Assembly (NCBI GenBank): GCA_976226885.1 | Contig: OZ320316.1 | Location: forward strand, 58,032,001-58,096,000 | Reading direction: 5' to 3' | Length of the DNA stretch: 64,000 bases | From: Iphione sp. A-MEVVRFRX5 | Taxonomy: Eukaryota | Shown: positions 1,281 to 64,000 of the stretch, in pieces | Layout: every line of letters begins with the position of its first letter | Position numbering within the stretch: position 1 is the first letter of the stretch | The notes under the pieces: model-generated | What the model was told of the DNA's origin: nothing | Databases searched by the model: none | What the model saw: the letters and a program-made list of their open reading frames with translations, nothing else | Position numbers and translations under genes: made by a program

Positions 1281-1743
1281 CAGTGAAACCCCTCGACAGT
1301 GGACAGCAGTGGAACTGTTCTCGCTGTTGGGGGTGTCCGCTGTCTCTGAGCTCCTGACTTTTTCAATAGGGTTCAATAAGCAATAATTATAGATCAATAG
1401 ATGAAGTCGCACCTCTCCTGGGCGTGACAGTCCATCAAAGAAGAGTATGGTTGCGCCTTATCCAGGGTGTTGGGACAAGATCGCACCTGTCCGAGGTGTG
1501 ACTATAAAAAAAGAGTATGGCCACACCTTCTCCATGGTGTCTGTTCATTGTACAGACAGTGAAATAAGGTTTTGGCACAGTCAAGGGACTGTCCAGAAGC
1601 AGCTGTCCACTGTCAGTGAGTGTCCGCTGTGTCCGAGCTCTTGTAAATATGTTACTTACTTGCTTAGTTTGGGACTGTCCTCCAGGCGTCTGTCGTAGGA
1701 GGCGTCTGCTGTAGCCGGGCATCCATTGTGAGGGTTTCCACTG
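1281..1743. mobile_element. Tc1/mariner-pogo (Tigger-like) MITE
   Basis: Starts TA|CAGTGAAACCCCTC and ends GAGGGTTTCCACTG (imperfect TIR). Contains a repeated subterminal GTGTCCGCTGT motif and no transposase. Confidence 0.65.
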
Positions 1744-4700
1744 AATGTAATTGCGAGCTAGTGAAAACTGGATACTCAAATACATTTATGTATGCTTTCA
1801 CCTCCACTGTATATAGTTATAAAAAAATTAAATACCTATCTGCATCAACCTATATCAAGGAAAAACTGATTTCGTCTCAAAATCATGCAATGATACAGCA
1901 CAACTCGGAGACGATAACCAAAGAACCTCTGTTTTATACATATACATTTATACATTTCCAATACTTCCTTGGGAATGAAACAGTTGTGGCTATCAGGAAA
2001 AAGGCGATAATCAATAGGAGAGTTTTTCTGTTCCTATACGGCAATGGTTCTTGTTTCAATGGTGAACTCATTTACTCTTTTTTAAGTCGAGGTATGAGCA
2101 AAGAACTACGATTATCAACACTAGCTCTCATATTTACTTTGGGTGATATCGCAAACTCAAGCGAAGAAAGATAATTGCTTTATTATAGTCGCACACGCTA
2201 TGTTCATATTGTGTTTAAGGGTGTATTTAAGGGGAAACCGGTCACTGTTAACGCTTAAGACCATTCGGGAAATTTCGAAGAAATAATTTAAAAAAGTAGA
2301 TATGTATATGTTCGACATTAGCCCACGTACACATTAGTCCACATACACATGATTATGTGCATTTTTAACACCCTCAACTATTAACGTACTATGATTCAAT
2401 AATGGGAATCTATATTCGATTCGGTGGTTCGGAAAGGGTATGGAATCCGTTATGAACATACACCTTGCATATTTAATTTAATGTATCTTGATTGGTTACC
2501 CACATGACAATAATAAGATTCGAGTAACGTTTCTCGCGCGTTACCTGTTATCTGTAAATTTGCTCAATGTGCCTTGTGGTTTCAATACCAGTGTCACTAC
2601 TGGCAGGTTGCAGGAGAGGCGGCACTGCCATCTATTGGCCAAAGAAGGAAATGCTATCAGCACGTACGTCTGAGTGGCAACTAGGTCAGGGGAGGATAAA
2701 TTCAGGAACAAAATAACGTGGAATATAATGTTGTGGTGTAGTTCTTTCTTGTTTTCCTATTATTGTGTACAGCAAGTCATTGCATGGCCCACTGCATAAT
2801 TGGCGCATTTATGGGTCTTTGATAACATAAACTAGAAAGCAGCGATATACCTAGGCAGTGTGTAGTACAGCGTTAGTTATGGGTCATCTGTAATCTTTGC
2901 ACATTCTTACTCGTCGAAATGGGACACAAGCTAGTCCGAGCTAGGATTTACACGCGTCCCTTATCAATATTACATCAAGCGATAAGGGTTTGATTCCATT
3001 TTAATCTCGCGACTTGCAGGAAAGGGGAATGGGGCTGCTTGCTCTAGGTCGGCACTCATCTTACACGACGGCCGATATCCAAAGTTAGCTCTCTCTGGCT
3101 GCGATGATCCCATTGATCCAGCTCATAAACGCTAATCGCCCGTTCCCAGTAATCCACAGACCTTCTCCTGGATCATCGCTCCTGTAATCTTATAATCGTC
3201 TCCTTTCAATATTTGACGAATGTTATCTTGTGCCGTGGGCAAGCATCATGATACCAGGGTTCTTTTAGTCACGATGATACTGAATTAGCCGACGTCGGAC
3301 CGTTTCAATTATCGTAGGAAGAAGTAAAATTTGTTTGCAGTTTGGAGATTTAATAAAGCAGTGGAGACTAATGATACATGGTAATTCCTATGCTAATCTG
3401 ATTACCGTTGTTCTGTTTGGAATTCAATGGTGCCCAGCGGTCCCGTAATGTTATTAATCTCAACTACGCCTGAATCATGGTGACATTCAGACCCAAGGAG
3501 GCATTCTCATGGGACCTATCGTTTATTATTGCAAACATCCAAGCAACCTCTACTATGCTGACCTTGTTCGTGGAACCGGTAAGGAAATACTGATAACGAG
3601 GATTCTTCTAACGGCAATGTGCCTGTTAGTCCGGCCTTGTAAGCTTGCGGATACAATCACATATAGCACAGTCGTTTTGGGATAAACTGAAGTAAGAAGA
3701 AAAGGCCGGTAGTATGGGTCCAAATAAAGGGATTCTGAACCGGAAACACTCCAGGCTGTCGCAGAGGCACGTAATCAAATAGCAAAGCATGATAGACGAG
3801 AAGCATAGCATCACAAGATACCCGTGAAATCATGATAGTGCAATCCTCCTTTGCGTGCCATTTTATGAGTTCATAAAACAAGTGGTAAATGAATATGGCT
3901 GCTGGATTGTTTACATCTATTCAAATTGGATACGACATCTGGTGCCAACTACACTTTTCTTAATTACGTGCTCGATCACGTGCCACCAGACATATTTTGT
4001 CTTTTAACTTTACTATACATCCGAATGTCCTTCCACGAATGAAGTGAAGGAGTCAGATCTATGAACGGCAAGTTCTACAAGAGGCTAATACGCTAATTAG
4101 GCAAGATTTTTAAAATGTAATTGATTAATTACTAGACCATCTCAAGAGAAGAACATGAGGAAGGTGCTAGCAAGATCTGAGCTTTGTCTTTAGTGAAGTG
4201 TGAGCAATACCCTCTGCTCTGGGCCATACAACTTGACAGTAAAAAGCCTTGGCATACCTGACACAGCCCCCATCTGTGGAGCTATGACGGCAAAGCCAAC
4301 ACAATGGAATCGCTGGGACAACGGCACTTCGTGCCAATGCGCTGGAACATTGATCCTGTCTGGGATCCCTGTCTCAGGATGTCCTCAGTGCTGCCATCAG
4401 CCTGGGGCCAAATTAGAGGCTAACAAAAACCTGCGTTATAACCGTCAGACTTGACAATTGGCGATAAGCGTAGCTTGCGCACGAGATCTATCGACTTATT
4501 TTTCTAGCTTGAAGGCAGCTATGAACCGGAAGGGGAGATCGTGCACGTCAGACTCCATTAGTAAAACCTTCACCGTAATCAAATGTGTCCGCAGATCTAG
4601 GAATGAATAGGCTGTATTTATTAAATAATCCTATTTTTGGCGGAGAAATCAATAGGTTCCTCCACCGGTAAGGGTCTTGATTCTATCTCTATAAAACGAC

Positions 4701-10730: not shown

Positions 10731-10979
10731 TGTGTATTGTATCATCCTCGCTAAAATCTGTTAAAATCATGTACCGGTATCACATATTGATGACATGTCA
10801 TTTATAATTATACACATCTGTGTTGTTAAAGTTAGGAACTGGATGCACATACAATTAGTATTTTCAATGCAGAGTAAATAAAGATTAAGAAACTATGGAG
10901 AAATAATTTACAGTTCCATTATACGCACAGAAGAAATGACGTCGTTTTCATTTAAGGATCGCCAGGTAGCCCTACACAC

Positions 10980-11163
10980 CCTGTTTTTCGTCTTGACTTT
11001 CTTGCGCCGGGTGCGACAGGCGTATTCAATGATGGACACAAATATGGCGACCAGGATCCCTAGCGCCAGGAAGATGAAGATACCCGCCATATTGCGAATG
11101 GACAACGACTGTGAGGTCAAAGTTGGCCGACTGGTGTCGGGGCACTTGTTTTCGGGCCACCAT
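10980..11163 (-). CDS. iGluR exon 13 (S2 end, M4); may read through to a stop at 10908
   Basis: Encodes (R)WWPENKC...LSIRNMAGIFIFLALGILVAIFVSIIEYACRTRRKKVKTKNR. Acceptor tttttattcag, candidate donor AGG|GTGTGT. Confidence 0.94.
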
Positions 11164-12162: not shown

Positions 12163-13088
12163 CTGACCTCCATCTCGTGCAGCCTTCCGTTCTCGGCAAG
12201 CCGTAAAAGTGCCATGCTCAGCATATCTCTATAAGGCGCGGCCTGCGGCACGGCGATAGCAAAGGACTTGAGGTCGATCTGCTCAACTATTTCGAGTAGC
12301 TCGCAGTTTTCGTTGACGCGCTGCCGCACGCTGGAGGACTCCCAGATGAAGGCGTATGAGCCTTCGGAGTTAGCCTGCACACGTTCGAAGCCAGCCTCGG
12401 CGCTGTTCACCATAACACTTGGCACGGCTGTGCTCATTGCATGCCAAAGGCTCTGATATTGGTGGATGCGACTGCGCTCGAGAAAGGCTGTCACATGACT
12501 GTTGCGCACCGTGCCATATTGCACGCGATTTTGCGCGGCCAGATCGCGCAAGGAGTTGATGGTTGGCACCTCGACGGAGGAGACCGTGAGCAGAGCGGCC
12601 AGGTTAGCCGTATATGAAGAGATGACCATGAGGCTGAAGAACCAGAGGGCGCCAGCCAGTATGCGACCAGAGATGGTGCGCGGGTTTATGTCCACTGTAC
12701 GCAGCACCATCGATGTGAAAGTGAACCACACGCTCTTATCCGCGCCGATCAGACGTATGCGTGGAACGGACGCCGCCACGGACGAGGTCGACGACGTCGT
12801 TGCCGCCGCCGACGAAGGGGGCACATGGTTGACTTCCATCGTCGAGGAGTAAAAGGCCGGCGCCACACGGTCGATTACATAGAAGGTGATGCTGAACAGG
12901 GCCAAGACACCGAGCAGCACAATCCACACCAGAGGAGATAGTGGGTTGAGAAAGAGGAAGAGGGACGACGTGGGCCGTGGACGCCGCAACACAACACTAA
13001 GACCAGTTGTCTTGAACGTCTTGGTAAAGTCTACAACCTCCTCCAGATCAGAAGTCGTCATGATGGGACCAATGCCAAAAGCTGCCGT
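12163..13088 (-). CDS. iGluR exon 12 (S1 end, M1, M2, M3, S2; 926 nt)
   Basis: Encodes EEVVDFTK, FLNPLSPLVW, PRTISGRI, SSYTANLAALLT, YGTV, YAFIWES, APYRDMLSMALLRLAENG. Acceptor ccttcttcag, donor AG|GTAAGA. Confidence 0.98.
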
Positions 13089-13578: not shown

Positions 13579-13782
13579 CCCATTTGCTACTTGTCCAACT
13601 AGCCCGTCCCAGGATCCATTGCCAAGTCTAGTTCCAAGTCGGCCGCCAGGGGCATTGTACAGCTCAAATGTAAAGCCAAGCAATTCAGAGAGCGCCTTAA
13701 CAAGGTCAATACAGAAGCCCTCATACTTTAGGTTGCCTTGGTAACGATGGTGGTCTTGTCTCCGTTGAACGAAAGGACTCTC
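13579..13782 (-). CDS. iGluR exon 11 (S1)
   Basis: Encodes ESPFV...YEGFCIDLVKALSELLGFTFEL...GSWDGLVGQVANG, the hallmark S1 motifs. Acceptor tttctgaag, donor GGG|GTAGGT. Confidence 0.96.
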
Positions 13783-18030: not shown

Positions 18031-18384
18031 CTGGGAAAGTGTAACAACAAAAAGACGTTATCGTTATTTTATGTTATTTCTGGGTGCAATGTGTGCCTTG
18101 TTTCCTTCACTCCACCTCTGCTTGATTCAAAGGGACATTGCCTGGGTTATGGTTAACTTAGAAATAGTCCAGGGAAATAAATGATTGATTTCCTTAATTA
18201 TCTGCCAAGTACAGCGTAAAAGTTTGTTTTTATTATGATTCCTGTTTCTTGCTTTAATACTGATGAAGTAGGTCCGCTGTCATTCTAAGCTAGCTGACAT
18301 CATGCATAGTGAATTTGTGAATCTGGCAATGGGAAGCAATGTGATTGGAAAGTACCTACGCCACTGTATTCCTAATAGACCTAC

Positions 18385-18489
18385 CTGCTCAAGACCACCA
18401 CGGCCTAGACCAAGTACATCGACAATATAACCTCGGCGGCGGCCATCTTGCCGGAACGTAAGCCGACCTGTGGCTCCGATGTCTCCTAT
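18385..18489 (-). CDS. iGluR exon 9 (ATD end)
   Basis: Encodes IGDIGATGRLTFRQDGRRRGYIVDVLGLGRGGLEQ (cf. GLTG.I.F...G.R..Y.LDI). Donor CAG|GTAGGT. The in-frame acceptor is a rare GAG. Confidence 0.85.
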
Positions 18490-18907
18490 CTCAACAAGAC
18501 AACGACACAAGTGTGTATGTATGTGAGTTGGCTTCGTGTGGAACGAACATGAATCTACTATAAATAGGTGCTTTGTTCTAAAGTTGCTTCAAATTTACAA
18601 GCCCGCGCACTATAGTGCAAACCAGTTTATTTGATGTAATGTAAATAAAAGAGTATGTGCAAGAAGGAGAACTGATATTCCCCCCGCCCACTGGTGAATC
18701 CAGTCCTTATATACTTCTAAATTTCCTGAAACGACACTGTGTTTGTCAAAATGTTTAGAAAGCTGGGATAATCATAGTGTAACATTTTAGAGGGAAGCCT
18801 TTAGAGTGCATTGTAGGTCCTCATGGTTTTCAGGACTGCAGAGGACCAGGTAGCTTTTCACGGTTGCAGGAAACCTGAAGACAAGGTCATCAGGGAGAGT
18901 GGCGTAC

Positions 18908-19031
18908 CTTGGGCAGGACACTGAGTATGTTGCCACGGCCGCTCCAATGACAACTCCCTCGGGCCCAGTGGTTGAGCCTGACCCCGTGGTACAAGGTCAA
19001 CAAGCTGTCAGTCACAGTAGCAAACTCATAC
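18908..19031 (-). CDS. iGluR exon 8 (ATD, Cys loop)
   Basis: Encodes YEFATVTDSLLTL...GSCHWSGRGNILSVLPK (cf. YTSALTYDAV...C...W..G). Acceptor ctgcctag, donor AAG|GTACGC. Confidence 0.78.
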
Positions 19032-20517
19032 CTAGGCAGATGCAGAGAAAAATATGAGGTAATGAACCGATGCAATGTAACACGTTCGTTGATCATCAAG
19101 ACAAAGTAGACGTACATCTATATGGTAGTATCGAATGGGAATTGCAGGGAATATAAACCTATTCTAATGTTGTCGCATTAACCGTAATATCTAGACACTT
19201 GTCAGAGTCCACGTCGCTGCACAACGCGAACGTTAATTACATATACCTAGAGAAACCTGGAGGTATCTGACGCTCTCCACTGAAGTCTTTCTCTACAAGT
19301 TTGAATGTTGTAAAATTGCCCCTGGTGTATGCGTATGGTGCTATATCGCGGTCTTCAATGGCCTGGAAATAAGAACAGATATTGAGGCTGGATACAAACA
19401 TATGTATGATCGTATTTCATGATTTCCTATATTTACAGCGCGCGGCCTATCAAGAAGCGTATCATACAGCATCCTACAATGTACGCGACATTGGATCAGA
19501 AAGAGGTACCTCATACTTTGCTTACAAACTTAACGAGGAAAAATAAAAATCTGTACAGAAAGAATAAATACAAATATACAGTTATTTTTACGGCACTGAC
19601 TGTTAGAGCATCCTCGTGGCCAGAGTTTTTGTCTAGTTTTAATTGCGTTATTCGGTGGCTGCTTAATCAATATTGAATATGCAGGAATGTAGTAGGAGGA
19701 AAATCGTTTGGCATTAAGAGTATCCTCTGAGAGGATAAATATATTTTCTTGTGTGGGGGGATTACGTACTCCTACGACCTAAAGTAATTAAAAGGCAATC
19801 ATTAGAAACGATTGATCGAACCAAACAAGAGTTTTTCACGCGATTGGACATTTATTTTGTCTTATTTATCGTGAAGTATTTACACATTAAACGTACGATG
19901 TAGTCAGATTTATCGCAAGATAATAAGCCAAAGAAAGTACACTATTATGTATATGGTGCATGAATAATTTGATGAGATGTCATAAGCATATATGCAAATA
20001 TTTGAATTTGGCTCCTACGCGTTGACTTGTACCTATTACGAAACATGCATAGTTTCTGTTCGACTGCTATCAGTTTCTGTGATTGCTTATGCTATAACCC
20101 TAATTAAACTACATGGGCATATTACATCGAATGTGGCTGTGGTCATCAGACGACGCCTAATGACCAATGCCATCCTGTGATAGCGAGAAATGTGTAACTA
20201 AGTTATACAAGGCATAAAATTCGGACCATCAGACGACGCCTAGTGGTCACTTTCACCGCTTACTGGTTTGCATTGGTTGTCTGCATATTCCCTATACACG
20301 CCATTTAATAGATATATCAGGCCCTGCAATCGATTTAACAAAAACAACAGAACGGTATACGCATACGTATGCATTTAGCCATGTATGAATTCTTTACAGG
20401 TACCATTACCTATTTCAAACTTAATTCGATTACTAATTTTTGAAGGTCAGTTCTCCTCACGGCTCTGTTTGCGAGAGAGGACGGATACTGCGCATGATAG
20501 GTATACTGGATGATTTG

Positions 20518-20616
20518 CATCATAACTAACTCGCAACTTCTTATGTAAAAGTATAAAATATTTTTACTTTGATACCTTCTGTATTTACAGCCGGATTAAC
20601 TAAGTTAGTTATGATG
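20518..20616. repeat. 14-bp perfect inverted repeat (small MITE-like)
   Basis: CATCATAACTAACT at 20518-20531 and AGTTAGTTATGATG at 20603-20616. Confidence 0.6.
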
Positions 20617-22346
20617 AAAGTTGTCCTTAAATCGTTTGAAAAAAAACAGATCTACGATGACGCACTTCATGACCACTCGCCATCATTCCCACTTGAAGGC
20701 GCACAATCTTGACAAGTTTTATAAACTCTAAGATAAAGTGGGAATTTAGTATGTGCAGAATGAGCACCTTAATTGGGCCATTATTCCTTGTCCTTGGACT
20801 GAGGAAATGCTGCAGTTCAAATCTTTGAACCTCTGATCATCTATTTATCCATACAAACGTTATGGATAAATAACCTCCGATTATATCTAATGTAGAACAC
20901 TTATAATTTCAGGAAAGATAGATATTATAGTTAATTGCTACGCAGAATCTGATGCGAATTTGGATACATCCTTACTAAGGTATTGCTCCTTAAACCATCA
21001 TAGTTTCGTAGCTTGTGGTTAGGTAGCACATAGACAGTAAGAGTCAGCTTGTGGTTGTATGCAAGGATTGTCTTTCAGTTGAAGGAGCTTTATGATTGTT
21101 TAAATCAGCTATTGCGTGAGTTGCAAATGATAAGAGTTGTCGGTGGTATTTATTGGTTAGTGAGTGAGTTGGTCGGGCTGTGAATCACTCATAGCACGAA
21201 TTGTCTTGGCCCCAAAAGGAAGCCGTATGTTAACAGCATAATGGCTTTTTCATATTACAGTCTTAAGCAATATTTGGGTTCAAGTTATCCAACAATGTCA
21301 CACTTCATCCAGTCACAAACAATCCTGCAAAAAAATACAATTCAATACGTTGCATTATATATCACATGTAGTGGATACAAAGATAGGATGGGAGCAACAG
21401 AAAACTATTTCCTCGGCATGATGGGGTGTGAAAACAATATGGTGACCTCGATAATGTGGGCTTCATTCTCTGTAGCATTTTCAGAGCAACGCGTTAGTGT
21501 GTAGAAGATGTACTTTATTACAAAGTAACGGTCCAGCCGTTACTGCCCAGCCTTTGCTTATAGGTAACCCCGCCTGTAGCTCACTTCGGAATACGATGAA
21601 CAATGTGTACTGCTAAGACAATTATCTGTCCTACTGGGCGCCTAGGGGAGCCAGAGGCGATGGCGGATTAGTGCCCTGGGAACTACTATTAGCCCCTCGT
21701 GTGCCTGAGTTATGAAGTGCTTGGTTAGATTGAAATGTTGACACTGGTTTCTCACACATGGGATTACCGACGGATGACGGCAAAAGCCATAATGTCATGA
21801 TTTAAGTGCAGGGGATGACGTCCGGTTTCAAAGATTTGATTACAGGTCGAGCTGCTGGCAAGGGGCAAAGACGAGACAAACTGTGATCTGTCTCTAAATG
21901 TGCAAAGCAAGATTTGTTACTTGAAACACAAACCCTTTACGTATGATCTTTATTCATTCATCTTCGTTCATGGTCTTTCCACGGGGCGGGGTACGTGCAA
22001 TACTGCGGGGATCATCCTTCAAGGGGTTCCCAAAAGTCTGACGAAATCGGTTTGCTAAAAGAAAGGAGAACAAATTTGTAAGTCTTTCTATTTCAACGTT
22101 TCCCTTTCCTCTATTTGGCAGACATATTAGCGTGAAATGAGGCGATAACAGCCTGCTTACCGTTTCATTGCAACAATTTCCAGCAAAGGATTCACCCTTT
22201 GCCCCGGTGGTTAAAAGGTAGCCTAGCTGCTTGCAAGAAACTTGCTGGAGGCGAAGTACGCCTTTTACACAGATCTCGTCCGCTACACATTTCCATTAAA
22301 ATTTACAGACGCTAAGGTGGAGCCAGGAGACATCATGCCTCTAAAC

Positions 22347-22418
22347 CTGGAAAGGCGCCGCCATGCCGTGCTGGAATGTCGATCTGGAGGTCTGTACCCA
22401 TTGCGCGATGAAAGGATG
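22347..22418 (-). CDS. iGluR exon 7 (72 nt)
   Basis: Encodes ILSSRNGYRPPDRHSSTAWRRLS(R). Acceptor gtccatacag, donor AG|GTTTAG. Phase 2-2 bridges exons 6 and 8; sequence similarity is weak. Confidence 0.6.
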
Positions 22419-22787
22419 CTGTATGGACACAGTATAGCACTGTGTTATGAATATTCAACCAATATAACGTCCTTTCTGTGGTGTTTTTTTTTCAACGCCC
22501 ATATCGGCCATGCGGCACAAAATGTTTCATTACGTATCATGGGGAAACCATCGGATGTACTGCAGTATGATGCTTTAAATTGAATGCCATATCGCTGTAG
22601 TTTCAATGAGTACATCCGGGCGGGGATAGTTTACTACAATGCAGCAAGGGGGCCTCACAAAAGCCATTCAGGGAGACGATTGGTCAACCCAGCGGCGGTT
22701 GTATACTGTACAGCCAGACAAGACAAATGGAGAGTGCAGGCACAAGTAAAGGTGTGTGAAACGGAAGATGGCGCTGATTAATTACAC

Positions 22788-22849
22788 CTGCACAGTGCGG
22801 ATGTCATGGTTAAATCCTGTGATACGATATGTGCCACCGACTCGGGCAA
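22788..22849 (-). CDS. iGluR exon 6 (62 nt)
   Basis: Encodes LPESVAHIVSQDLTMTSALC(S), resembling SGVNMTG of kainate ATDs. Acceptor ccattttccag, donor AG|GTGTAA. Phase 0-2 fits its neighbours. Confidence 0.65.
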
Positions 22850-24086
22850 CTGGAAAATGGAATGAGGACACGCTCGGAGGTGTGAAAGGAGCCCGGAGCG
22901 GGCGGCACGCGTGGACCGAGGCGCCGAGGGGCCCCGGGCCCTTCTATCAACGACGACGTTGGCTTCAGTGGTCGACATGAGCCATAAAGCACTTGCACAA
23001 CTGCCACTGTGTACAGGAAGATAGCATTATCGAGGTACAAGCTGATAAATGGGCCGTCGAGACAACGCTTATAGGATGAAAACATGGCGGTAAATCCATA
23101 TTCCCGCGCCCCTTTAAGTAGTGACCAGATGGGACAAGCCGGTGATGAAATGAACAATCATTGCAAATTGCCATGACTGTATTCATCTCAGTAAACTATC
23201 GTATTTTATTTTGAAAATAGGTTGGCCTAAATTGTTCACTGTCGGGGATAGACCGATGGATCCGTGGTGCCTTTATTTCGGATACTTGAGAGTTTCGCAC
23301 ATCATCGAAATTGTCCATTTAAATTGAGTCTCTTTCCCCCTCATCTGTCTCTGCAAGCACGCGGTGAGGGATTGCATGCTTGGAAAACAGAAGAAAACGC
23401 CTGTCTCATTTTCACGTCTAATGAAGGTGAACAGCTTTGGGTGAAGAACGGACGTCCGAATAATAAATGACAATTTCATGCATCCCTTGCTGACATTGAT
23501 GCGATCGGACACGCATCGCTTTTTGCCATAAAGCTTCAACTGAAGTCCTACTTGAAGCAACCCAAGGAAACAGCATTAAGAATCAAAAATTACGCCCTTG
23601 CATGAGAACCGGCCCACGTGATGCGGCAGGGATGAGGCTGTCAAAGTAAGTGCTTTTAATCACATAGCCTGTCTCGGTACCGTATTTCAGTGAGCAGAAA
23701 AAAGCACAGGAGGTATGATTCCCTTGAGCAGATGAGGGAGCATCTCCAATCCTTAGGCGTATACACGTACACCAAGAGCCTTTTCTGGTGTGTAACACAG
23801 CACGATGACAACAAAAGCCCCTATTTTAACGTCCTCAGAATGAAGCTCAAGTCTTGCTTTTGCTCCCCTATCATCGACAAGCACCACCTCGCATCATCTA
23901 GGGTGCCCTCAGCACTGAATCTTTGCCAAGGCGCCACCTGCACAAAGGGGCGGAGCCCAGGCCGAAAGTTACAACTGAATCACTGCCACCACCCGGCGCG
24001 TTACCGTAATGGTGATCTGCGCGTGGCATCCACTAAGACGGGTCAGAACACACAGCGAAATGCCGGTCATTACCGGGCGCACTTAC

Positions 24087-24140
24087 CAAGTTGGGGATGA
24101 CCCACCAGTAGTAGCTCGTCAACATGCTTAGATGCAGAGC
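24087..24140 (-). CDS. iGluR exon 5 (54-nt micro-exon)
   Basis: Encodes ALHLSMLTSYYWWVIPNL, matching the AxxLGMxxxYYHWI motif. Acceptor ttctccctgacag, donor TTG|GTAAGT. Confidence 0.85.
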
Positions 24141-24505
24141 CTGTCAGGGAGAAATACAGACAGTTGTTAGACGATATTGGTTCAGGCATCTGGCGTCCGT
24201 CCGGCACCGAAGGCAGCTTTATATATCTACCAGTTATGGGCGTTTGCTTTTCAGCCAACGACAAAAGACATCAAAGGTACAGATATTGACAACCTCCACG
24301 GTAAACAAAACATGTTCCCATCGGTGTTATTATTTCAATTCTTACTGCCAGCCGTAAATGTTCGCATGGGGATTTGCATTTTCTTTATTTCTACCTCCGA
24401 ATGACGTAAATATTATTACAAAGCCGAAATCTGTAGAAACCTTATATGTACACAAGCCTAATACTACTGATTCAATAGATATTTTTGTGGAAAACAGGGC
24501 CTCAC

Positions 24506-24687
24506 CTGGTTAAGGATTCGAGAGGTTAGTATCCTGGAGGTGGAAAGGACAATGTTTGGCACGTCTGTGTCTCGCAGTGTCAGTAACGATTCCCTCAGCT
24601 CTTCGTCACTGCCATTCTGGTTGGCAACCTTCCACGAACGAATCCGCATTGTGTTGAAGAGTACCATCTGTTCGATCAAATGGGTTC
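24506..24687 (-). CDS. iGluR exon 4 (ATD lower lobe)
   Basis: Encodes GTHLIEQMV...ELRESLLTLRDTDVPNIVLSTSRILTSRILNQ. Acceptor ccatctcgacag, donor CAG|GTGAGG. Confidence 0.88.
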
Positions 24688-25017
24688 CTGTCGAGATGGA
24701 AACAAAAGAATAGTGATGACAGAGTGCGCTTAGACGCGGGCAAGGTGTCCTTGACGATGAATTTCAATGAACCTCTTCTAAAGGAACATGTCTTCCCATC
24801 GCACACTTAAGTTGTATATTCAATTACCTTATGAAGGAATCTAAATACATAAATTTGTCTTAAAATATAAAAAGCATACAAGTAAACGTCTAATTGAAAG
24901 CTTGAATATGAATGACTGTACATCGCAACCCGTTAATAGATTCGGAGCATAACGTACGGTGTACTGTTTTACTGGAAATAGTGGTAGATGATATATCATC
25001 AAGACTGAATTATGCGA

Positions 25018-29424: not shown

Positions 29425-30960
29425 TTATGAATAGTCGCTACAAATTATTGTACTTCTCAGAAGTTGTTCATATGATGCTAGTTAAACCTAAGGCATCAGT
29501 TGTTTGAAAATTATGAATTTTTCTTATCAGGATTTGGGAAACTGTTTTCTATGTATGAACCCAGCAGTACCCAAATTAAGCAGTAAACTTCGATAGGCGC
29601 GTGCTTATCAAACAAGATCATCCATAAGGCTGACCTTAAAAGATACAAAGGTAATGCACGTTAAGAATGCGACTATGTAGCCAAGCGTTTCATTATCGAT
29701 GTGGACAGTTTCGGTATCATGTATACATGAGCAGGACACGCAGTATCCTTTCATGGATTTGGCAATCGAGTGGTTTCTCTTAAATGCCATTTCAGGATTT
29801 TAGGTGGGATAGGTTGTTAAAATGTTCTGTTCTTTCAGAAGAATTGACATACAAAGTTAATACAAGCATACCTACAACTTTGAGCCAGTTTTTTTTCTAC
29901 TAAGTGTGTATATATGTATATATAAATTTTCATTTATCTCTCAGAATAGCCTATGCATTAAGGCTTTTAGTGTCATCTATATATGTGCACAGCTAGAAGG
30001 CCCTATTGTAATAGATTGAACCACAAGGAGTGGCTAGTTTCAAGCCCTTGCCTAATGAACAGCACCCTGTATCTGGTATTAGCAAGAAAGTGAATAGCTA
30101 AACGGTCTTTTTACAAGACATGAAAAGCTGAATGTATTAAGAGAATCATTTCATGTGTAAAACTATATAATATATGTTTTAGAACAAAACATGCTTCACT
30201 TAAATAATTTATGTTTCAAATTTGGAGCAACCATTCATCCCACATACGTAGTGAAAACTTATACGTAACTTTACCCTGTAATAAAAAATCTCATTTTTGA
30301 AGTGGACCTATTTAACAAAGAGTAGCAAGTATTGTAAAGCTGTACGACTCAAGCTTGCCTGACATAAACTTTCACGCCATAAATGTCAACAGAAAAACAA
30401 TTGAACTGTCATTTCCTAGCTCTTTGCCATACTTACTGAGAACATAAAATGGAAATGGCTATATTTTAGATGAAAACAGACAGATATACTTAACTAAAGG
30501 TGTACCTATCCGTTGCCGAAGTCAACATTAACCTGTGCTTGATATAGTTAAGTGGTTAACGTGTTCGTGTATTCAAATTACCTACTGTTGGGGTACCTAG
30601 GAGATAGAAGCGGTGCAGCATTTCCATTAAGTCCTGCATAAATTTCCATTAAATGTACATCAAGCTCGCAAAGCACATACTTAAAACGACATAAGAACTG
30701 CTGCTGGAACGTATCCCTACCGTATTAAATATTGCATGCCTTCAGTTCGAAACAGTGGAATGTCCCGTTTTGGATCATCCATCAAGTGAAAGTATCGAAC
30801 AAGCGATATCAGGTGTTAAACGACACACGTCCCGAAATCGATACCACATTATTACAGTTATTACTGACCGCTAAGTGGCACTATTAGGCGATACTTAAAG
30901 GTTCATTTAACTGATCGTGCCAGGGTAATGAGCTACTCTGAACCGCTCCAAGTTGCTCAC

Positions 30961-31206
30961 CTTCAGCGCTGTCATAGATGACGGCCACTGTGTCCCACTT
31001 GTAGCGCTTGGCCACTTCAGTGGCGATGAATACAATATCCATTGGATCTGGCGCGATGGAGATCATGTTGTAGGGTCGATACTGGTGGTGTTCAAGCGGC
31101 GAAGTCACGAAGTAAGGGATACCGAACTTCTCTGTGGCTGTTGCCAAAGGAACGACGTATGGGCCTATCATTGCGGAGATATTAGTTGTTCCAATTTCCA
31201 TGTAGG
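30961..31206 (-). CDS. iGluR exon 3 (ATD)
   Basis: Encodes AMIGP, FGIPYF, ISIAPD and KRYKWDTVAVIYDSAEG, all typical iGluR ATD motifs. Acceptor ttcaccccag, donor G|GTGAGC. Confidence 0.93.
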
Positions 31207-34200
31207 CTGGGGTGAATATAAAAAATGCGAATGTGTGAAAAAATGTCAAGATGTTTTCATCATACGGCATTTTCTTCCAGTCATTACATATAAAATATGA
31301 AGGTGTAAGTAAGGCGCAATAGCAATGCTTCTCTCAAGTTGCAAGCTGTATATATATGTACATAAACAACACAAACTAGACATACTCTCACAAGATTAAA
31401 GCTGCAGTATGGCATAGTCATCAAACTGAGACAAATGATAAAATGAGGAAAATATTTTTATGGGCACGTAACTCTGCTGGTATTACTGCACGTCTCTCCC
31501 GCAAAGTTGGTTATAAAACTAGAACTCATACATCATCGGCTTTCAATTTGTTCTTTCAATTGTCCCCCATATCTATTAACGCACGAATGTCAGATAATAA
31601 TCGTTTGCGGGGATACGGGCGGATAGTAAAGCTTGCCAGCCGTCCGTTTGATCATCAGCGACAATGCTCGCCTTTCCGCGGCGCTTGCCCGGTTGCAATG
31701 GAGCTGCAGCGTGGCCACAATAAGTAGTGGCCCCAGGACAGCTTTATGGATAGGCTAATACGGTCTGTTACCGGCACTGGGAACTGAATACATGTGTACA
31801 TGCAATATGTAGAATGATGTGTGCGCGCGCTGTGGCGCCGACATATTGCTCGACATGAAGCAAGGTAGATTTACTGTGCCATACGAGGTGAAGACGACGG
31901 TGCCATTGGATCCAGGGATGGTGTGCGAAGTACATGTATCTGCTATCTAGGTCACGCCCTAAACCAAGCCATCTGTCACTCGCCGATTTATGCTCAAAAC
32001 TTACGGCATACACGTGCCTCGTGAATGATTTAGAGCGCACCTCCATCCGCTCAATAGACATATTGTAGACAGAAAAAGTCTAAAGGCAACGACTGCGAAT
32101 GGCGTGTGATTAATCGGTCCCTCGCTGTGCTTTATTTACATCCAGTGAAATGGATTTCGACCTGTGTGACGGGTCTCCTGCCGCTGGCGCCACGAGCAGC
32201 GCCCATTTTCGTCAGACACTATCGCAGGCTTTCCTTGTCCCCCCGTCGAATGGCGGCGATAAATTGTCGCAGGTGGTTTCAAAATCTGGAGGAGTGCGTT
32301 CTTTATGGGAGTTGTGCCGACCAGCCAGATGTCTAATCCGCTGATGTATGTCGCACGCACGATGGTAAGCACTAGCCCGCCCCTCACCGCTAGCTGCTCT
32401 AGACATATGTGACGTGGCATGAAGCCACCAGGCGGCAACCTAAATCATCGCCCCCTGCGACTGATCGCCAATATCTGCACTAGGCACAGGCCACCGGAAG
32501 TGGTCGCCGTCGTGCGCCAAACGTCACGCGCACTGAGCTTGGCGCTCGTCGATCGTAGCGCCCTCCCGACCCCCAACCGATAACTTTGATTTATAGAGCG
32601 ACGTCTCGGAAGACTGCGCGGACATCTGTTTACGAAACTAAATCTCAGTAAACATTTCCGTTCAAACAAAGCACGTTGATGGTGTCACTGCTACACCTTG
32701 CTATACCTTGTCAAGCACAGTAGACTGGCTGCTTTGCTTCCTCCGATACTCAACCCCTGACACAATTACCTTCTTCCTCTGTCCCTGATTTACAACCTAG
32801 CTCGGTTGGCCCGGTACACCTAAGCCAAGCGAACCACCTTAAACGATGCAGCGCTTTATTTATCGTGCAATTTTAGTGACACTTTTCCTCAGCCTTTTTC
32901 TTATTGAATGTTGACCGAAGGGATATCTTAGATATACCCAAATCCTTTCCTTCTCTCCATCAGGTATGCCGAGGAAACAATGGTGAATTTCTAGAAAACG
33001 ACGTGAGTGTATACAAAAAAAGGTTGGCATGTAGGCTGATTATAATCCCTAGTGTATATATGGCGCATCTGCACGTGGATCTCCCGGCGTGGCAGGAGGT
33101 TGGAAGGGCTGCGTCGGGATACGAAGTCAATATGGCGGTTCGTTTTTCTCTCCACACAAGGGCTCCGCGTGCTGGGTACACGAACAAAAGCCGGGGTGTT
33201 GGCCACATCGTCGGCAGCCACACAAGAGCTGCTGGAAACCGATGCCCGCCAGGTCTGAGAGAGTGGCGACAGTGCATAACCATGTCAGAGCTTTACCGCC
33301 ACGCCATAGGGTGAGGGTGGGGATGGGTGTCGGGGAGTACGGCACTACTGGAGACCTAGTCGATAGCGGAATGTGTTGGTCTGCATAACGCTTGCTAGCT
33401 TGTATAAGAAAATCAAGACACCTGTCGCACTTTTGTTGCATGTCAATTTTAATGTTACAGTCTGCTAAGCGTTATAATCTGCTTTCTACATTAGTTCAAA
33501 GTCTAAACGATCTATCTTGCTCAACACAGGGAATTTTTGTTTCAAGCCAAGGCTGACAATAAGAAATGTTACATCTGTAATACGACTTCGTTCTTCCATT
33601 AGTGCTGCTTCTGACATTTGCAGCTGTGCAACGGCAGTGCAACGAACAACGAGGCTCAATAAATCCCTCCATAAAGGGTCCATTCTCTCTGTGGGCGGAC
33701 AATGATGAGCATCAATGTGGAAGGAACCAGAATGAAGGAATTTCATGTATTTCATAACGGTCAGGGAAATAGCTATCGGCAGGAATAAATGGACATTATA
33801 GCACGGTTATTGCTGTGAATTTTTTTAGAACCGTAGCCATCTAATGTCTCATTAGAATATACCCCCCAGACCAGCGCCCATTGCTATTCAGGTTTGTACT
33901 CGCATTGTCCAAAAGGAATCAATACTAATGATATTACTTATTTCCAAACTCTGAATGATATATAACTCTGTTTTAAGAGGTGGCGGGTAAAATATCTTCC
34001 TTATATAGGTCATTACATCTGTAGATTTAAACACAGTCCAGGCGATTTTTCCAAGTAAGCAAGGATTTTTCCGAAATGGTTCCTTTAAATCACCTCTGTG
34101 AGAAACTACTCCAACGAGAATGACCCTTGCCTACAGAAGATTAGTTTAGAGCCCCAGGAGATTAGACTGATTGACAGGTGTGTGCTATTGCGTCGGCATC

Positions 34201-49258: not shown

Positions 49259-51559
49259 TTCGCATGTATTGCGATCAAGGGAAAAAATGAGATGGCTTTA
49301 TACAATTTTTCAATTTACCATTGCACAATATTGATCGCAAAAAAAATCTGAAAAGAGCAGGTATCGACTTAATATGTCGAATCATAACATCCTCTCTTGA
49401 ATGAGTGCACCAGTGATCCGTGACAAGCCTAGACAAGCCTGTGCTTCACACAGTAGGTCCACGTACTATTGACCTTTATCCGTTGCGCTAACAAGCCTTG
49501 CCATGATAAAAAATGCAATGGTGCAGTGCTGGGCTTATTCCCTGGAGTGGTGGTGATACCGGTAATAGGATAATTTGGGACGTCTTAGCAAACAAGACAA
49601 GGTAGATGTTACAGTGATTGAATTGACACTACTGGTGTCCATACTGAATTTGTGGCACCCTCGACGGCAGTGAAGAATATGCTTGTGAAAAGTAATTACT
49701 CATCATATGTACCAAATTGCTCCTGCAGTAATTTAGGAACAATATTATTGTATTATAGCACTGCGTTTTTATATGGTGAATTTAGGATGTCAGTGGCTTA
49801 CAAGGAGGTTATTTATATTTTTACAGTTACCTCACAGGTAAGAGCTGACCATTAATTTATCTAGTTATCTTTTATTTAAGGGTTCTAAAGCCATGGTTTT
49901 AAGGTCCTATCATAGGTTCATCGGGTGACCAGCTACTTATTCTAAAAGTACTAATAGTATAGAAAGTTTTCTACACTTATGTCAATTTGGTTATTTCAAA
50001 TGACCACTGCTTAGTCTGACAGGTTAGTGTCATTATCTAATTCTTTCTATGTAAAGCGACCCAAGAATATAACATTACTTCTAAATATACTTTGTCCTCA
50101 TAAGCCTGTAACCGAAGTACGATTAATGAATGGTATTTCCTTAAGATCCTTGGAAAGCTACATATAACACAGACAGAACATATTTGCTACACATTCTGAG
50201 TTCGGTAAAATGATAATGTATATCAATGACACAGTGCAAATACGTACAAAATATAGATGCCTACTATTCATAATGCTCTCATCATTGCTTGATGATGTTG
50301 GACATTACTGCCAGCAAGCCACTAATCTGTAGGTTGAGTGATATCAATCTTATAAGAAAAACATCTAGTGTAAATGGATTTACATTTTGCAGATACGTTT
50401 ATAAATCTTGTATTTGTAATTCTTCCTTCACTACAATGTAACAACATATCACCTGTAAGATAATATAGTCTTCAAGGTATTTCCAAGAAGATCACAGCCT
50501 TTGTGAACAGAGGCCTGAAAGGTTACTCATTGCAACAAAAACTAAACAAAAGAAAGCCGGTACTTTTTTCGTAAATGGAAACTGGGGAAATAGGAGTCCT
50601 CGCCTAAATTTAGTCAGTTGTGGGTTTATTGTCTTCAAAAGAGACAGGGAACCGATATGTTCCTTCAACAGTGTTCCACGTGAAGTAGATAAAAAGAAAC
50701 GTCCTCGCTTCTGGCAGACAAAATCAACACAACAGCATGTGTGTACCTGGATTCTTTTCAACAATATCTTTATCATTTATACTACTGGAGAGCCTATAAT
50801 CAAATCATCAAAAGCATTGTTATCCCGTAGATTTCTTTCCAAAGAGATATAATACAAGAATATTTTAAACCGACAAAGAAGGGATAAGATGACTTCACAG
50901 GCCCTACAGCGCGTTGTCTTAAAGGGGGCCAAAGAATCGTTAACTTCAAAGTAATGAAAAGGTATCGCAATAAAAACATTACTTACCAAATTCACGATGC
51001 TGGTCTGAATGTTTACTGTGCATTAGGTTACTCAGAGGTCTGGGATTACGCCTTTGTGAGATTATCTATCGAACCCAGCTTCATTATTCCCACCGCACAC
51101 GTACCATAGCACACGTTTCCTTTTACGCATACATGAAAATCTGTAACATGATAAAGACTAAAATAAAACAAAGTCCTCGGCAATTTTTGAGCTTCTTCAA
51201 TGGGTTATAATTGCCCCCAGCAGATTAATTGTTGGGTACTCCCTCTAAAGATTTTTAACGTGTGGGAACATCGCCAAAGGCATAGTGTTCACAAAAGTGC
51301 ATTTAACACTCATGTTCCTATCCCAGGCCACGTTAGTGCGTCAAACTATCATCTGTGCAGTGATGATGTGTTCATCATAAAAGACTCATTTTGTCGTAAT
51401 TATCTCGTTTTAGGAGGCACCGTTACAAGGTTGTCTGAATCTGTCACATCTATTCCGGAAGGCATAAAAGCCCCAAGGCGAAATTTTCCAGCGTTCCAGG
51501 GGAAATCTATGTCTCGAAAGAAATGCGTCGAGGTGACAATTTGCTTGAATGTTCAAAAC

Positions 51560-51720
51560 ATCCTACACTATTCATCAGATATCTGCTCATTCCAGAAGGC
51601 AGCACCTATGCAAGATAGTTCTCATCCAACAAGGGAGGCAGTAGGTAGCATTTCTGGAGAACATACTGATGAAGAATCATGTCTGAAACGGTGCCACTGG
51701 AGAATATTGCCGCGGACGAT
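51560..51720 (+). mobile_element. Possible decayed LINE RT C-terminal fragment
   Basis: VQNILHYSSDIC (cf. VRPILEYxSxVW) and EESCLKRCHWRIL (cf. YEERLKxLxWxxL) lie within ORF 51200-51730. Confidence 0.35.
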
Positions 51721-51935
51721 GCCGCTATAAGGTCATTTTGGCGGCGATCCCATGTGTATCAATGCGTATGATACGACTCTGTTGAAGGCTGGCTGTTGTG
51801 CTGGAAGAGTGAATGTGCATAATCACGAACTGCTTCTCCCGTAAAGTCGGTGCTAGAGGCTGTTACGAAGTAGCAATGGTCGTGGTTGTGTATTCTTAGT
51901 TTATATTTGCGGTAGCATGTGCTACTTGTGGAGAA

Positions 51936-63182: not shown

Positions 63183-64000
63183 GTAAACCGGTAATGGATC
63201 GCCTGATTAAGCGCTGGCTGGCCCTCTAAATTTCGCCATGGGCTGGGACTTGATCTTTATCCGGCCCAGCGGTTCCAATGCTAATCACTGAACCGCGCTT
63301 TACGTGTACAGGTATATTCCCTGCTGGGGAACATTTTGGCAACGAAGTTGGTTGAATGAACTGGATCTTTTCCAGTAGTCCATCTCGTGACGTATACTGG
63401 ACAGCGAAAGGTACCACCGTCCCACTGGGCACCTTATATGAACCGAGCGTTGTCGTCCAGTCCTGGGGGCATAATCCCTCTAGAGAAACCATTGCTTCAC
63501 ACCCACCGCCATAATTTCCTGATTGTAAGATATGGCTACAATCACAGAGAAAGGGTATCTCTGTGTGAAGTCCCTCAAGGCTTTCACCAAGCCAGTACCA
63601 TGACCACCTTCTCCGTTGGCTATTGCATTCATCTTCCCAAAGAGCGTCGATCTCCAACCTGCCAGCCAGTCCCTCCTCCAGATATCTGCTTTGAAGAGGG
63701 ATGCTTCTCGTACCCGAGGTTCTAGTCGCCAAACAAGACCAAAAACATTCCCCAGTGCCATAGTTCTTTACCCGCTTGGAGGCTGGATTTCGACTGCTAA
63801 ACGAAGGCAGTGGGAGTTCTGAGGCCTTGTAGGGGTTCAATCGCGGCTGCAGGCTGCTTTAGTGACAGTGTGGAGAAATGGAATTGAGCAACCGTAGGAG
63901 GTACGGCGTACGGGGTGGAACTATTGGGGTGGCAGGGGGCTGTCAAATGCCTCCGATCCAAGATATCCTCAGTAATTCACTTTCATTTTCAGTTCAGATG

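Follow-up and report, generated by a model that had tools for sequence, protein, structure and literature searches.

The window analysed here, a stretch of 64,000 nucleotides from the 1.18 Gb genome assembly (89 contigs) of Iphione sp. A-MEVVRFRX5 (GCA_976226885.1, contig OZ320316.1, positions 58,032,001-58,096,000), carries on its minus strand a gene which, as judged from its sequence, belongs to the ionotropic glutamate receptor (iGluR) superfamily and whose pore loop reads V-L-R-T, with Leu at the Q/R site and a chromosomally encoded Arg at the adjacent (+1) position. This Leu-Arg (L-R) arrangement, which usually goes along with the absence of the following Gly, is a conserved and previously undescribed form of a known principle, the fixed pore arginine. 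By analogy with characterized receptors, we consider it fairly probable that the gene codes for a pore-setting, Ca2+-tight and non-agonist-binding heteromer subunit within a lophotrochozoan clade that is neither of the AMPA nor of the kainate type.

Residues and Register of the Pore Tip

The codons on the minus strand between window positions 12740 and 12681 (GAT AAG AGC GTG TGG TTC ACT TTC ACA TCG ATG GTG CTG CGT ACA GTG GAC ATA AAC CCG) translate to DKSVWFTFTSMVLRTVDINP. The pore segment of GluK2 pairs with SVWFTFTSMVLRTVDINPRTIS without any gap, and a shorter GluK2 stretch of 16 residues pairs with WFTFTSMVLRTVDINP in the phmmer alignment. AMPA and kainate receptors show M-Q-Q-G-x-D/E at the same columns, which are also occupied by the AMPA-type sequence P0039 (MQQGCD). 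Since the alignment is ungapped and the spacings from the Trp to the Pro and from the Pro to the SYTAN motif are identical in GluK2 and this gene, the register is fixed: Met is replaced by Val, the Gln of the Q/R site by Leu, the +1 Gln by Arg, and the +2 Gly by Thr, while the acidic residue at +4 is present as Asp. The first-pass annotation of this DNA had described a gap-free M2 with Leu (CTG) at the Q/R site, Arg (CGT) at +1, Thr in place of the filter Gly and a retained +4 Asp, and the codon reading (Table 1) and the GluK2 alignment confirm all of these assignments. They also agree with its view that the Arg is genomically fixed and does not come from A-to-I editing of CAG: an A is absent from both the Leu and the Arg codon, so that this type of editing can neither generate nor remove either residue, and RNA editing as the source of the pore residues is ruled out.

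An AlphaFold2 model of the large exon, which spans the region from the end of S1 to S2, was obtained with a mean predicted local distance difference test (pLDDT) value of 75.8, and contains M1 (helix, residues 55-78), the pore helix (residues 119-130) and M3 (helix, residues 142-173). The residues L132-R133-T134-V135-D136 lie in an extended stretch (residues 131-141) between the pore helix and M3, and the modelled pore tip is thus predicted at the canonical Q/R-site position, the apex following the pore helix. The best Foldseek matches of the large exon are structures of the ligand-binding domain (LBD) plus transmembrane domain of GluK2 and GluA receptors.

Conservation and Origin of the Motif

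The question whether orthologues would read Q-Q-G at the pore tip, which the first-pass annotation had left for a later check, is answered by the closest relatives, which show I/V-L-R-T-V-D, so the motif is not private to this genome. A sequencing error or private variant is ruled out by this conservation across relatives from other assemblies. A word search with the large exon yielded single-exon fragments from unannotated assemblies, among them P0001-P0003, which share 74-88% identity with this gene and have I/V-L-R-T-V-D pores, and P0004-P0008, which share about 52% identity and have V-L-R-A/T pores. Pores of the x-L-R-x type occur in P0004-P0008, P0010, P0011, P0025, P0027, P0035, P0289, P0292 and a paralogue from the same genome (L002), and P0028 carries L-L-K-G. 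An exhaustive search of representative sequences (4320 matches at E <= 1e-3) and an additional profile search extended the range to V-L-R-D, S-L-R-A, I-L-R-N, C-L-R-A, G-L-R-G and the one L-L-K-G, and also brought in relatives without a basic residue (L-S-G, L-T-G, L-N-S, V-S-G, G-D-S). Altogether, a Leu followed by a basic residue is present in 18 sequences, which are about 38-88% identical to this gene, and its occurrence in sequences as divergent as these argues for more than chance. The acidic residue at +4 (Asp or Glu) is kept in every L-R member. An annotated full-length protein with an L-R pore was found neither in the word search with the exon nor in the exhaustive representative, nemertean-relative region and profile searches; the nearest named protein is CAPTEDRAFT_169825 of Capitella teleta, which has a V-V-S-G pore.

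A careful maximum-likelihood tree was calculated from 61 sequences after removal of the pore-tip columns. It shows a clade of 55 rows (support 99/95, starred) that stands opposite the AMPA, kainate and delta-like rows. Nested in it is a clade of 29 rows (98/94, starred), in which CAPTEDRAFT_169825 is the sole named protein and Leu occupies the Q/R site in 26 of the 29 rows; inside this clade, all 18 Leu-plus-basic sequences form one clade (91/80). The Leu replaced the Gln of the Q/R site in the ancestor of the 29-sequence sub-clade, and the basic +1 residue arose at the base of the 18-sequence sub-clade, usually together with the loss of the +2 Gly. Since this gene and its paralogue L002 sit in different, strongly supported L-R sub-clades, the motif is older than their duplication; the L-R state has been retained since its origin through at least one gene duplication, and two such genes are present in the host genome.

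Within the large exon, identity to P0001-P0003 is unevenly distributed: it amounts to 35-38 of 39 residues in M1, 18-20 of 20 in M2 plus pore and 29-30 of 31 in the post-pore segment plus M3, to 75-83% in S2, and to about 45-55% in the M1-M2 loop, which also contains indels. This pattern, together with the open reading frame and the canonical splice sites, indicates purifying selection on what would be a working channel core. A pseudogene was rejected on the basis of the same features.

Ligand-Binding Site

The position corresponding to the Arg that binds the alpha-carboxylate of the agonist (R485 of GluA2, R523 of GluK2) is occupied by Leu in this gene (Table 1). A Leu at this place is found only here and in P0001; all remaining clade members with coverage of the position carry an Arg. 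This gene retains the acidic 705-equivalent, and R485 and D705 are both retained in the majority of the L-R members. Positions 653-655 read S-H-V in this gene and S-x-V/I in most of the clade; Ser653 together with a non-polar amino acid at site 655 was used as a rule of thumb for receptors of the glycine type. The L-R sub-family as a whole therefore looks ligand-competent with regard to its sequences, possibly for glycine-like agonists, and the lineage of this gene looks ligand-blind. The loss of the ligand-site Arg is confined to the immediate lineage of this gene, and the pore motif is far older.

Paralogues in the Same Genome

The second L-R gene of the host (L002:1186-2082, plus strand; G000:C10:57989581-57990426) is located about 41 kb past the low-coordinate end of the window and about 54 kb from the large exon, on the opposite strand to this gene. 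It is 52% identical over the large exon and shows the pore A-L-R-V-T-D, with the codons TTG and CGG for Leu and Arg. In its ligand-binding site, the LBD Arg is kept and a Gln is found at the acidic 705-equivalent. Further paralogues of the wider clade lie on the same chromosome (L003, L004 and L006/L009, at 71.86, 62.31 and 62.39 Mb of G000:C10, respectively), with the respective pore tips V-G-S-G-A-E, V-Q-G-S-T-E and V-Q-G-G-T-E. The large exon extending from M1 to S2 is undivided in three of the four paralogues and split in L006/L009. Over the wider clade, the channel core is conserved except that variation is greatest at the Q/R, +1 and +2 positions. The host genome also contains a canonical kainate-type gene with an M-Q-Q-G pore.

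Class Assignment

The typical iGluR layout is present in this gene, with M1, the re-entrant M2 pore loop, the M3 gate motif and M4 interleaved with the S1 and S2 parts of the LBD. GluK2 is the best match of the large exon among all chains of the PDB (phmmer, E 2e-54 over 306 residues), and the top 60 sequence matches in the PDB as well as the top structural matches consist of kainate or AMPA receptors only, with no NMDA receptor chain among them. The gene is placed outside of the AMPA and kainate receptors, in a separate clade of 37 rows in a quick tree (support 100, starred) and in the 55-row clade of the careful tree. The signature of AMPA and kainate receptors (M-Q/R-Q-G in the pore; R485, G/S653-T655 and E705 in the ligand-binding site) is replaced by V-L-R-T, Leu and S-H-V, with only E705 being kept. 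All named members of the 55-row clade are lophotrochozoan, namely the nemerteans Tubulanus and Lineus, the annelids Owenia and Capitella, and molluscs such as Aplysia ('glutamate receptor 8'), Pecten, Haliotis, Biomphalaria, Octopus and others. A Drosophila-type ionotropic receptor (IR) or a kainate subunit, considered as first identity, was rejected in view of the genome size of 1.18 Gb and of these relatives. The gene is best explained as an intact iGluR subunit gene of a lophotrochozoan, probably annelid, host.

The clade probably corresponds to the group that is termed 'Phi-like' in recent phylogenies. Aplysia GluR8 has been classed as an AMPA receptor (PMC5225553), and Phi was at first held to be absent from protostomes (PMC6307864) but was later reported in molluscs, alongside a 'Zeta' class (Zeng et al., 2021; PMC8437780). 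A study from 2025 describes a single Phi clade for lophotrochozoans, an AKDF 'group II' with molluscs and annelids, and Epsilon homologues in Capitella (PMC12226733). The published classifications disagree on this clade, and its class label is therefore provisional. Only a third of the proteins of the newly described groups, and no Phi subunit, keep Q586 at the Q/R site (PMC6307864). The absence of this Gln does not define the clade, however, because several sister sub-clades within the 55 rows carry it (V-Q-A-G, L-Q-G-S). The only distinction noted for Epsilon is an insertion in the intracellular M1-M2 loop (PMC6307864). In the members of the clade this loop is shorter than in GluK2, which argues weakly against Epsilon, and this gene has a low-complexity insert of its own.

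Gene Model and Locus

The homology searches were run with the exons queried singly, and the features derived from them are compiled in Table 1. The large exon lies in a minus-strand open frame of 315 codons (window 13106-12162) and is bordered by the acceptor cttcag|ACG (AG at 13090-13089) and the donor GTCAG|gtaaga (GT at 12162-12161). The S1 exon was also recovered when eight full-length relatives served as tblastn queries (lowest E 8e-15) and has the acceptor ctgaag|GAG and the donor GGG|gtaggt. The M4 exon follows the acceptor ttattcag|A, and its first base completes a split Arg codon with the terminal AG of the large exon, after which the sequence continues with W-W-P-E-N-K-C; it matches the C-terminal end of Pfam Lig_chan (E 0.006) and was found by tblastn with relatives at E values down to 1e-9. 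The putative amino-terminal domain (ATD) exons and the S1, large and M4 exons are colinear on the minus strand, and the canonical AG/GT splice sites have compatible phases.

The M3 gate motif reads SYTANLAAL (window 12591-12617, minus strand) and S/AYTANFAAL in the closest relatives, the usual form being SYTANLAAF; the altered ninth residue is common to the group of the window gene and that of P0004-P0008. The Ser/Thr/Ala-rich insertion in the M1-M2 loop occurs in this gene only and is absent from all relatives in the alignment, including the 74-88% identical P0001-P0003. In the AlphaFold2 model, it coincides with pLDDT values below 50 (residues 100-116), and it could be a phosphorylation-rich linker or the result of simple repeat growth. 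The only other open reading frames of at least 140 codons in the window (1728-2174 and 51200-51730 on the plus strand, 63226-63840 on the minus strand) gave no Pfam match, and no tandem repeats were found between 30 and 40 kb of the window, which looks gene-poor except for the receptor gene.

Table 1. Features of the receptor gene in window coordinates.
Feature	Position	Strand	Evidence or remark
Putative ATD exon	30950..31207	-	ANF_receptor, E 2.6e-4, under the curated cut-off; relatives as tblastn queries (residues about 75-177), E 3e-10 to 5e-5
Further weak ATD exon matches, colinear	24784-24500, 24143-24069, 18564-18346 (span 18346..24784)	-	full-length relatives as tblastn queries, E 4e-4 to 0.15; coordinates are those of the matches
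S1 exon, first half of the LBD	13579..13782	-	Pfam Lig_chan-Glu_bd PF10613, E 1.8e-16
Large exon: end of S1, pre-M1, M1, M1-M2 loop, M2 pore helix and loop, M3, S2	12163..13088	-	Pfam Lig_chan PF00060, E 3.9e-23
Leu (CTG) at the alpha-carboxylate-binding Arg position	13044..13046	-	alignment: VRE in GluK2, DLE here
Ser/Thr/Ala-rich low-complexity insertion, about 25 residues, cytoplasmic M1-M2 loop	12768..12850	-	
Pore tip V-L-R-T-V-D	12690..12707	-	codons, ungapped GluK2 alignment
Pore-tip Val (GTG)	12707-12705	-	
Pore-tip Leu (CTG), Q/R site	12704-12702	-	
Pore-tip Arg (CGT), +1	12701-12699	-	
Pore-tip Thr (ACA), +2	12698-12696	-	
Pore-tip Val (GTG)	12695-12693	-	
Pore-tip Asp (GAC), +4	12692-12690	-	
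M4 exon: WW..C motif, M4 helix, short C-terminal tail	10908..11163	-	stop TAA at 10910-10908

Proposed Function and Alternative Explanations

A subunit of the kind proposed here would carry a fixed positive charge at the upper end of the selectivity filter, without the usual ring of glutamines but with the acidic +4 residue retained. Channels containing it would be expected to be nearly or entirely Ca2+-impermeable, to escape block by intracellular polyamines or Mg2+, and to combine a near-linear current-voltage relation with a low unitary conductance. Because the ligand-binding Arg is replaced by Leu, the product of this gene would most likely act as the non-agonist-binding partner of ligand-competent paralogues and not as a homomeric channel gated by amino acids. 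Three systems that have been studied by experiment bear on these expectations. NR1/NR3 receptors, in which NR3 contributes Gly-Arg at the N and N+1 positions, are Ca2+-impermeable and insensitive to Mg2+ (Cavara et al., 2010; PMC2974739). Heteromers with an AMPA subunit from an acoel, which has a genomically encoded Arg in a Q1R2 pore, exhibit linear current-voltage relations and are Ca2+-insensitive, and rectification is restored by the R2Q exchange (PMC13520880). In GluR6/GluK2, the G592A exchange abolishes polyamine block and the Q590A and Q591A exchanges decrease polyamine affinity about 7- to 12-fold, with the channels still functioning (PMC2217257). The acidic +4 residue has been recognized as key to polyamine binding (PMC12226733). 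Judged from the three tested precedents, the L-R channels are suggested to exclude Ca2+, and the initial proposal of the first-pass annotation, that cation flux would be altered or absent or that the subunit would have a dominant effect in heteromers, appears consistent with them.

Several observations weigh against such a role. L002, the only close paralogue identified, has the Arg as well and so would not supply a pore face free of Arg; an Arg at +1 in all four subunits might preclude cation conduction altogether. The charge of the Arg might be masked through pairing with the retained +4 Asp, and no precedent joins a Leu at the Q/R site with an Arg at +1. Finally, the support for the L-R clade is moderate (unstarred in the careful tree), the ATD exons match weakly, and the first coding exon with the signal peptide was not found by tblastn with full-length relatives.

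One alternative, which we regard as unlikely though conceivable, is a non-conducting receptor. In this case the subunit, and perhaps the whole L-R sub-family, would serve a structural or signalling function, as is largely so for the GluD receptors of vertebrates, and the pore tip would either be tolerated or seal the channel. Cation flux would be strongly opposed by four Arg residues in a narrow filter for cations. Without a TARP, homomeric rat GluA2 Q1R gives no detectable current (PMC13520880), the lineage of this gene lacks the ligand-binding Arg, and L002 lacks the acidic 705-equivalent. Yet the near-invariance of M3 with its SYTANLAA motif, of the pore helix and of the +4 acid across the L-R clade is hard to explain without ion flow, and the joint retention of R485 and D705 in most members points in the same direction. 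That the ring of +1 arginines, in the absence of the glutamine ring, instead shifts the selectivity toward Cl- and creates an anion-permeable or charge-inverted, inhibitory channel seems very doubtful, since no iGluR with predominant anion selectivity is known and the cation-attracting Asp or Glu at the cytoplasmic mouth (+4) is present throughout the L-R members. The strict conservation of the Leu-plus-basic pair in the 18 sequences does suggest that the charge itself may have been selected, and fully R-edited GluK2 homomers have a measurable Cl- permeability.

It appears quite improbable that the gene codes for an IR-like sensory tuning subunit, which would bind no amino acids and pair with a co-receptor in sensing another kind of stimulus, its pore reflecting permeation requirements that are relaxed or different. 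An ATD is absent from most IRs, and colinear ATD-like exons are found upstream of the S1 exon here; moreover, GluK2 and GluA give the nearest matches in both sequence and structure, and the matches include no named IR. The lost LBD Arg and the S-H-V at positions 653-655 would agree with such a subunit, but these are features of the immediate lineage of this gene and not of the wider L-R clade, and the Arg loss is thus much younger than the pore motif. Divergent pore tips are indeed common outside the classical classes, Q586 being kept by only a third of the proteins of previously unreported groups (PMC6307864). A decaying duplicate or an assembly error, in which the pore residues would stem from neutral drift or miscalled bases, is extremely improbable and largely refuted: apart from the missing first exon and the low-complexity insertion in the M1-M2 loop, which might be taken as signs of decay, the gene shows a 315-codon open frame with canonical splice sites, the same three pore residues occur in relatives of other assemblies, and conservation is 90-100% in the transmembrane and pore segments, in contrast to the divergent loop.

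Beyond the heteromer subunit favoured here, the L-R sub-family may be envisaged as a new functional iGluR type with a fixed ring of arginines and without a glutamine ring above it, either anion-permeable (and then inhibitory, possibly of the glycine type) or currentless and signalling by another route, in which this gene would provide a ligand-blind pore-setter for heteromers. We consider this unlikely; it would represent a third, independent and more extreme 'calcium-proof' pore, in a group of animals from which recordings of receptors of this clade have never been made.

Relation to Known Receptors

Vertebrates tune the Ca2+ permeability of their fast glutamate receptors by RNA editing at the Q/R site of GluA2, and NMDA receptors employ GluN3 for the same purpose. 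With the L-R clade, one more independent lineage with a fixed basic residue at +1 comes to light, this one outside the AMPA class; its peculiarities are the Leu at the Q/R site, the usual loss of the filter Gly and the maintenance of this state through gene duplication. The principle itself is not new, since variation of the pore tip outside the classical classes has been known since 2018. The clade does, however, provide a naturally occurring triple mutant in which the joint control of selectivity, conductance and polyamine block by the Q/R, +1 and +2 positions can be tested, and it points to an unstudied lophotrochozoan (probably annelid) receptor sub-family, most of whose members carry a glycine-type signature and one lineage of which looks ligand-blind.

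The Phi class (GluF) of the AKDF group (Ramos-Vicente et al., 2018; PMC6307864) resembles this gene in being of the AKDF type, but neither AMPA nor kainate, and in lacking the Gln at the Q/R site. A loss of amino-acid-binding residues, as seen here, is also common in this class. The pores of amphioxus GluF (V-G-Q-G-G/A-E) are unlike the V-L-R-T of this gene and recall those of a sister sub-clade (V-G-x-G-x-E).

A close parallel to the pore arginine is the acoel subunit Hof-98014323 from Hofstenia miamia (Wang et al., J Gen Physiol 2026; PMC13520880), which has the same +1 Arg, likewise encoded in the chromosome and not introduced by RNA editing. This protein belongs to the AMPA class and keeps the Gln at the Q/R site, whereas the gene described here is of a non-AMPA type, has Leu at this site and has lost the +2 Gly; the +1 arginines of the acoel subunit and of the L-R clade are of independent origin. 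In GluN3A and GluN3B, the Q/R/N-site residue, which is small or apolar, is also followed by an Arg at +1, and GluN3 binds glycine, in line with the signature of Ser653 and a non-polar residue 655 in most of the clade of the L-R gene. However, the resemblance is one of mechanism only, since GluN3 is part of the NMDA subfamily and has Gly instead of Leu, while this gene is nearest to the kainate and AMPA receptors and comes from a lineage without the ligand-binding Arg. The Q/R-edited forms GluA2(R) and GluK2(R) share a pore-loop Arg with a dominant effect in heteromers, namely lower Ca2+ permeability, lower conductance and weaker polyamine block, but there it is located at the Q/R site and is generated by A-to-I editing of CAG, compared to the +1 position and the codon CGT in this gene (CGG in the paralogue). 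Finally, the same three positions have been substituted in the GluR6/GluK2 scanning mutants (Panchenko et al., 2001; PMC2217257), but these carried single changes to Ala or Trp and were read out by properties other than Ca2+ permeability, and the triple combination L-R-T, which occurs naturally in the gene described here, was not among them.

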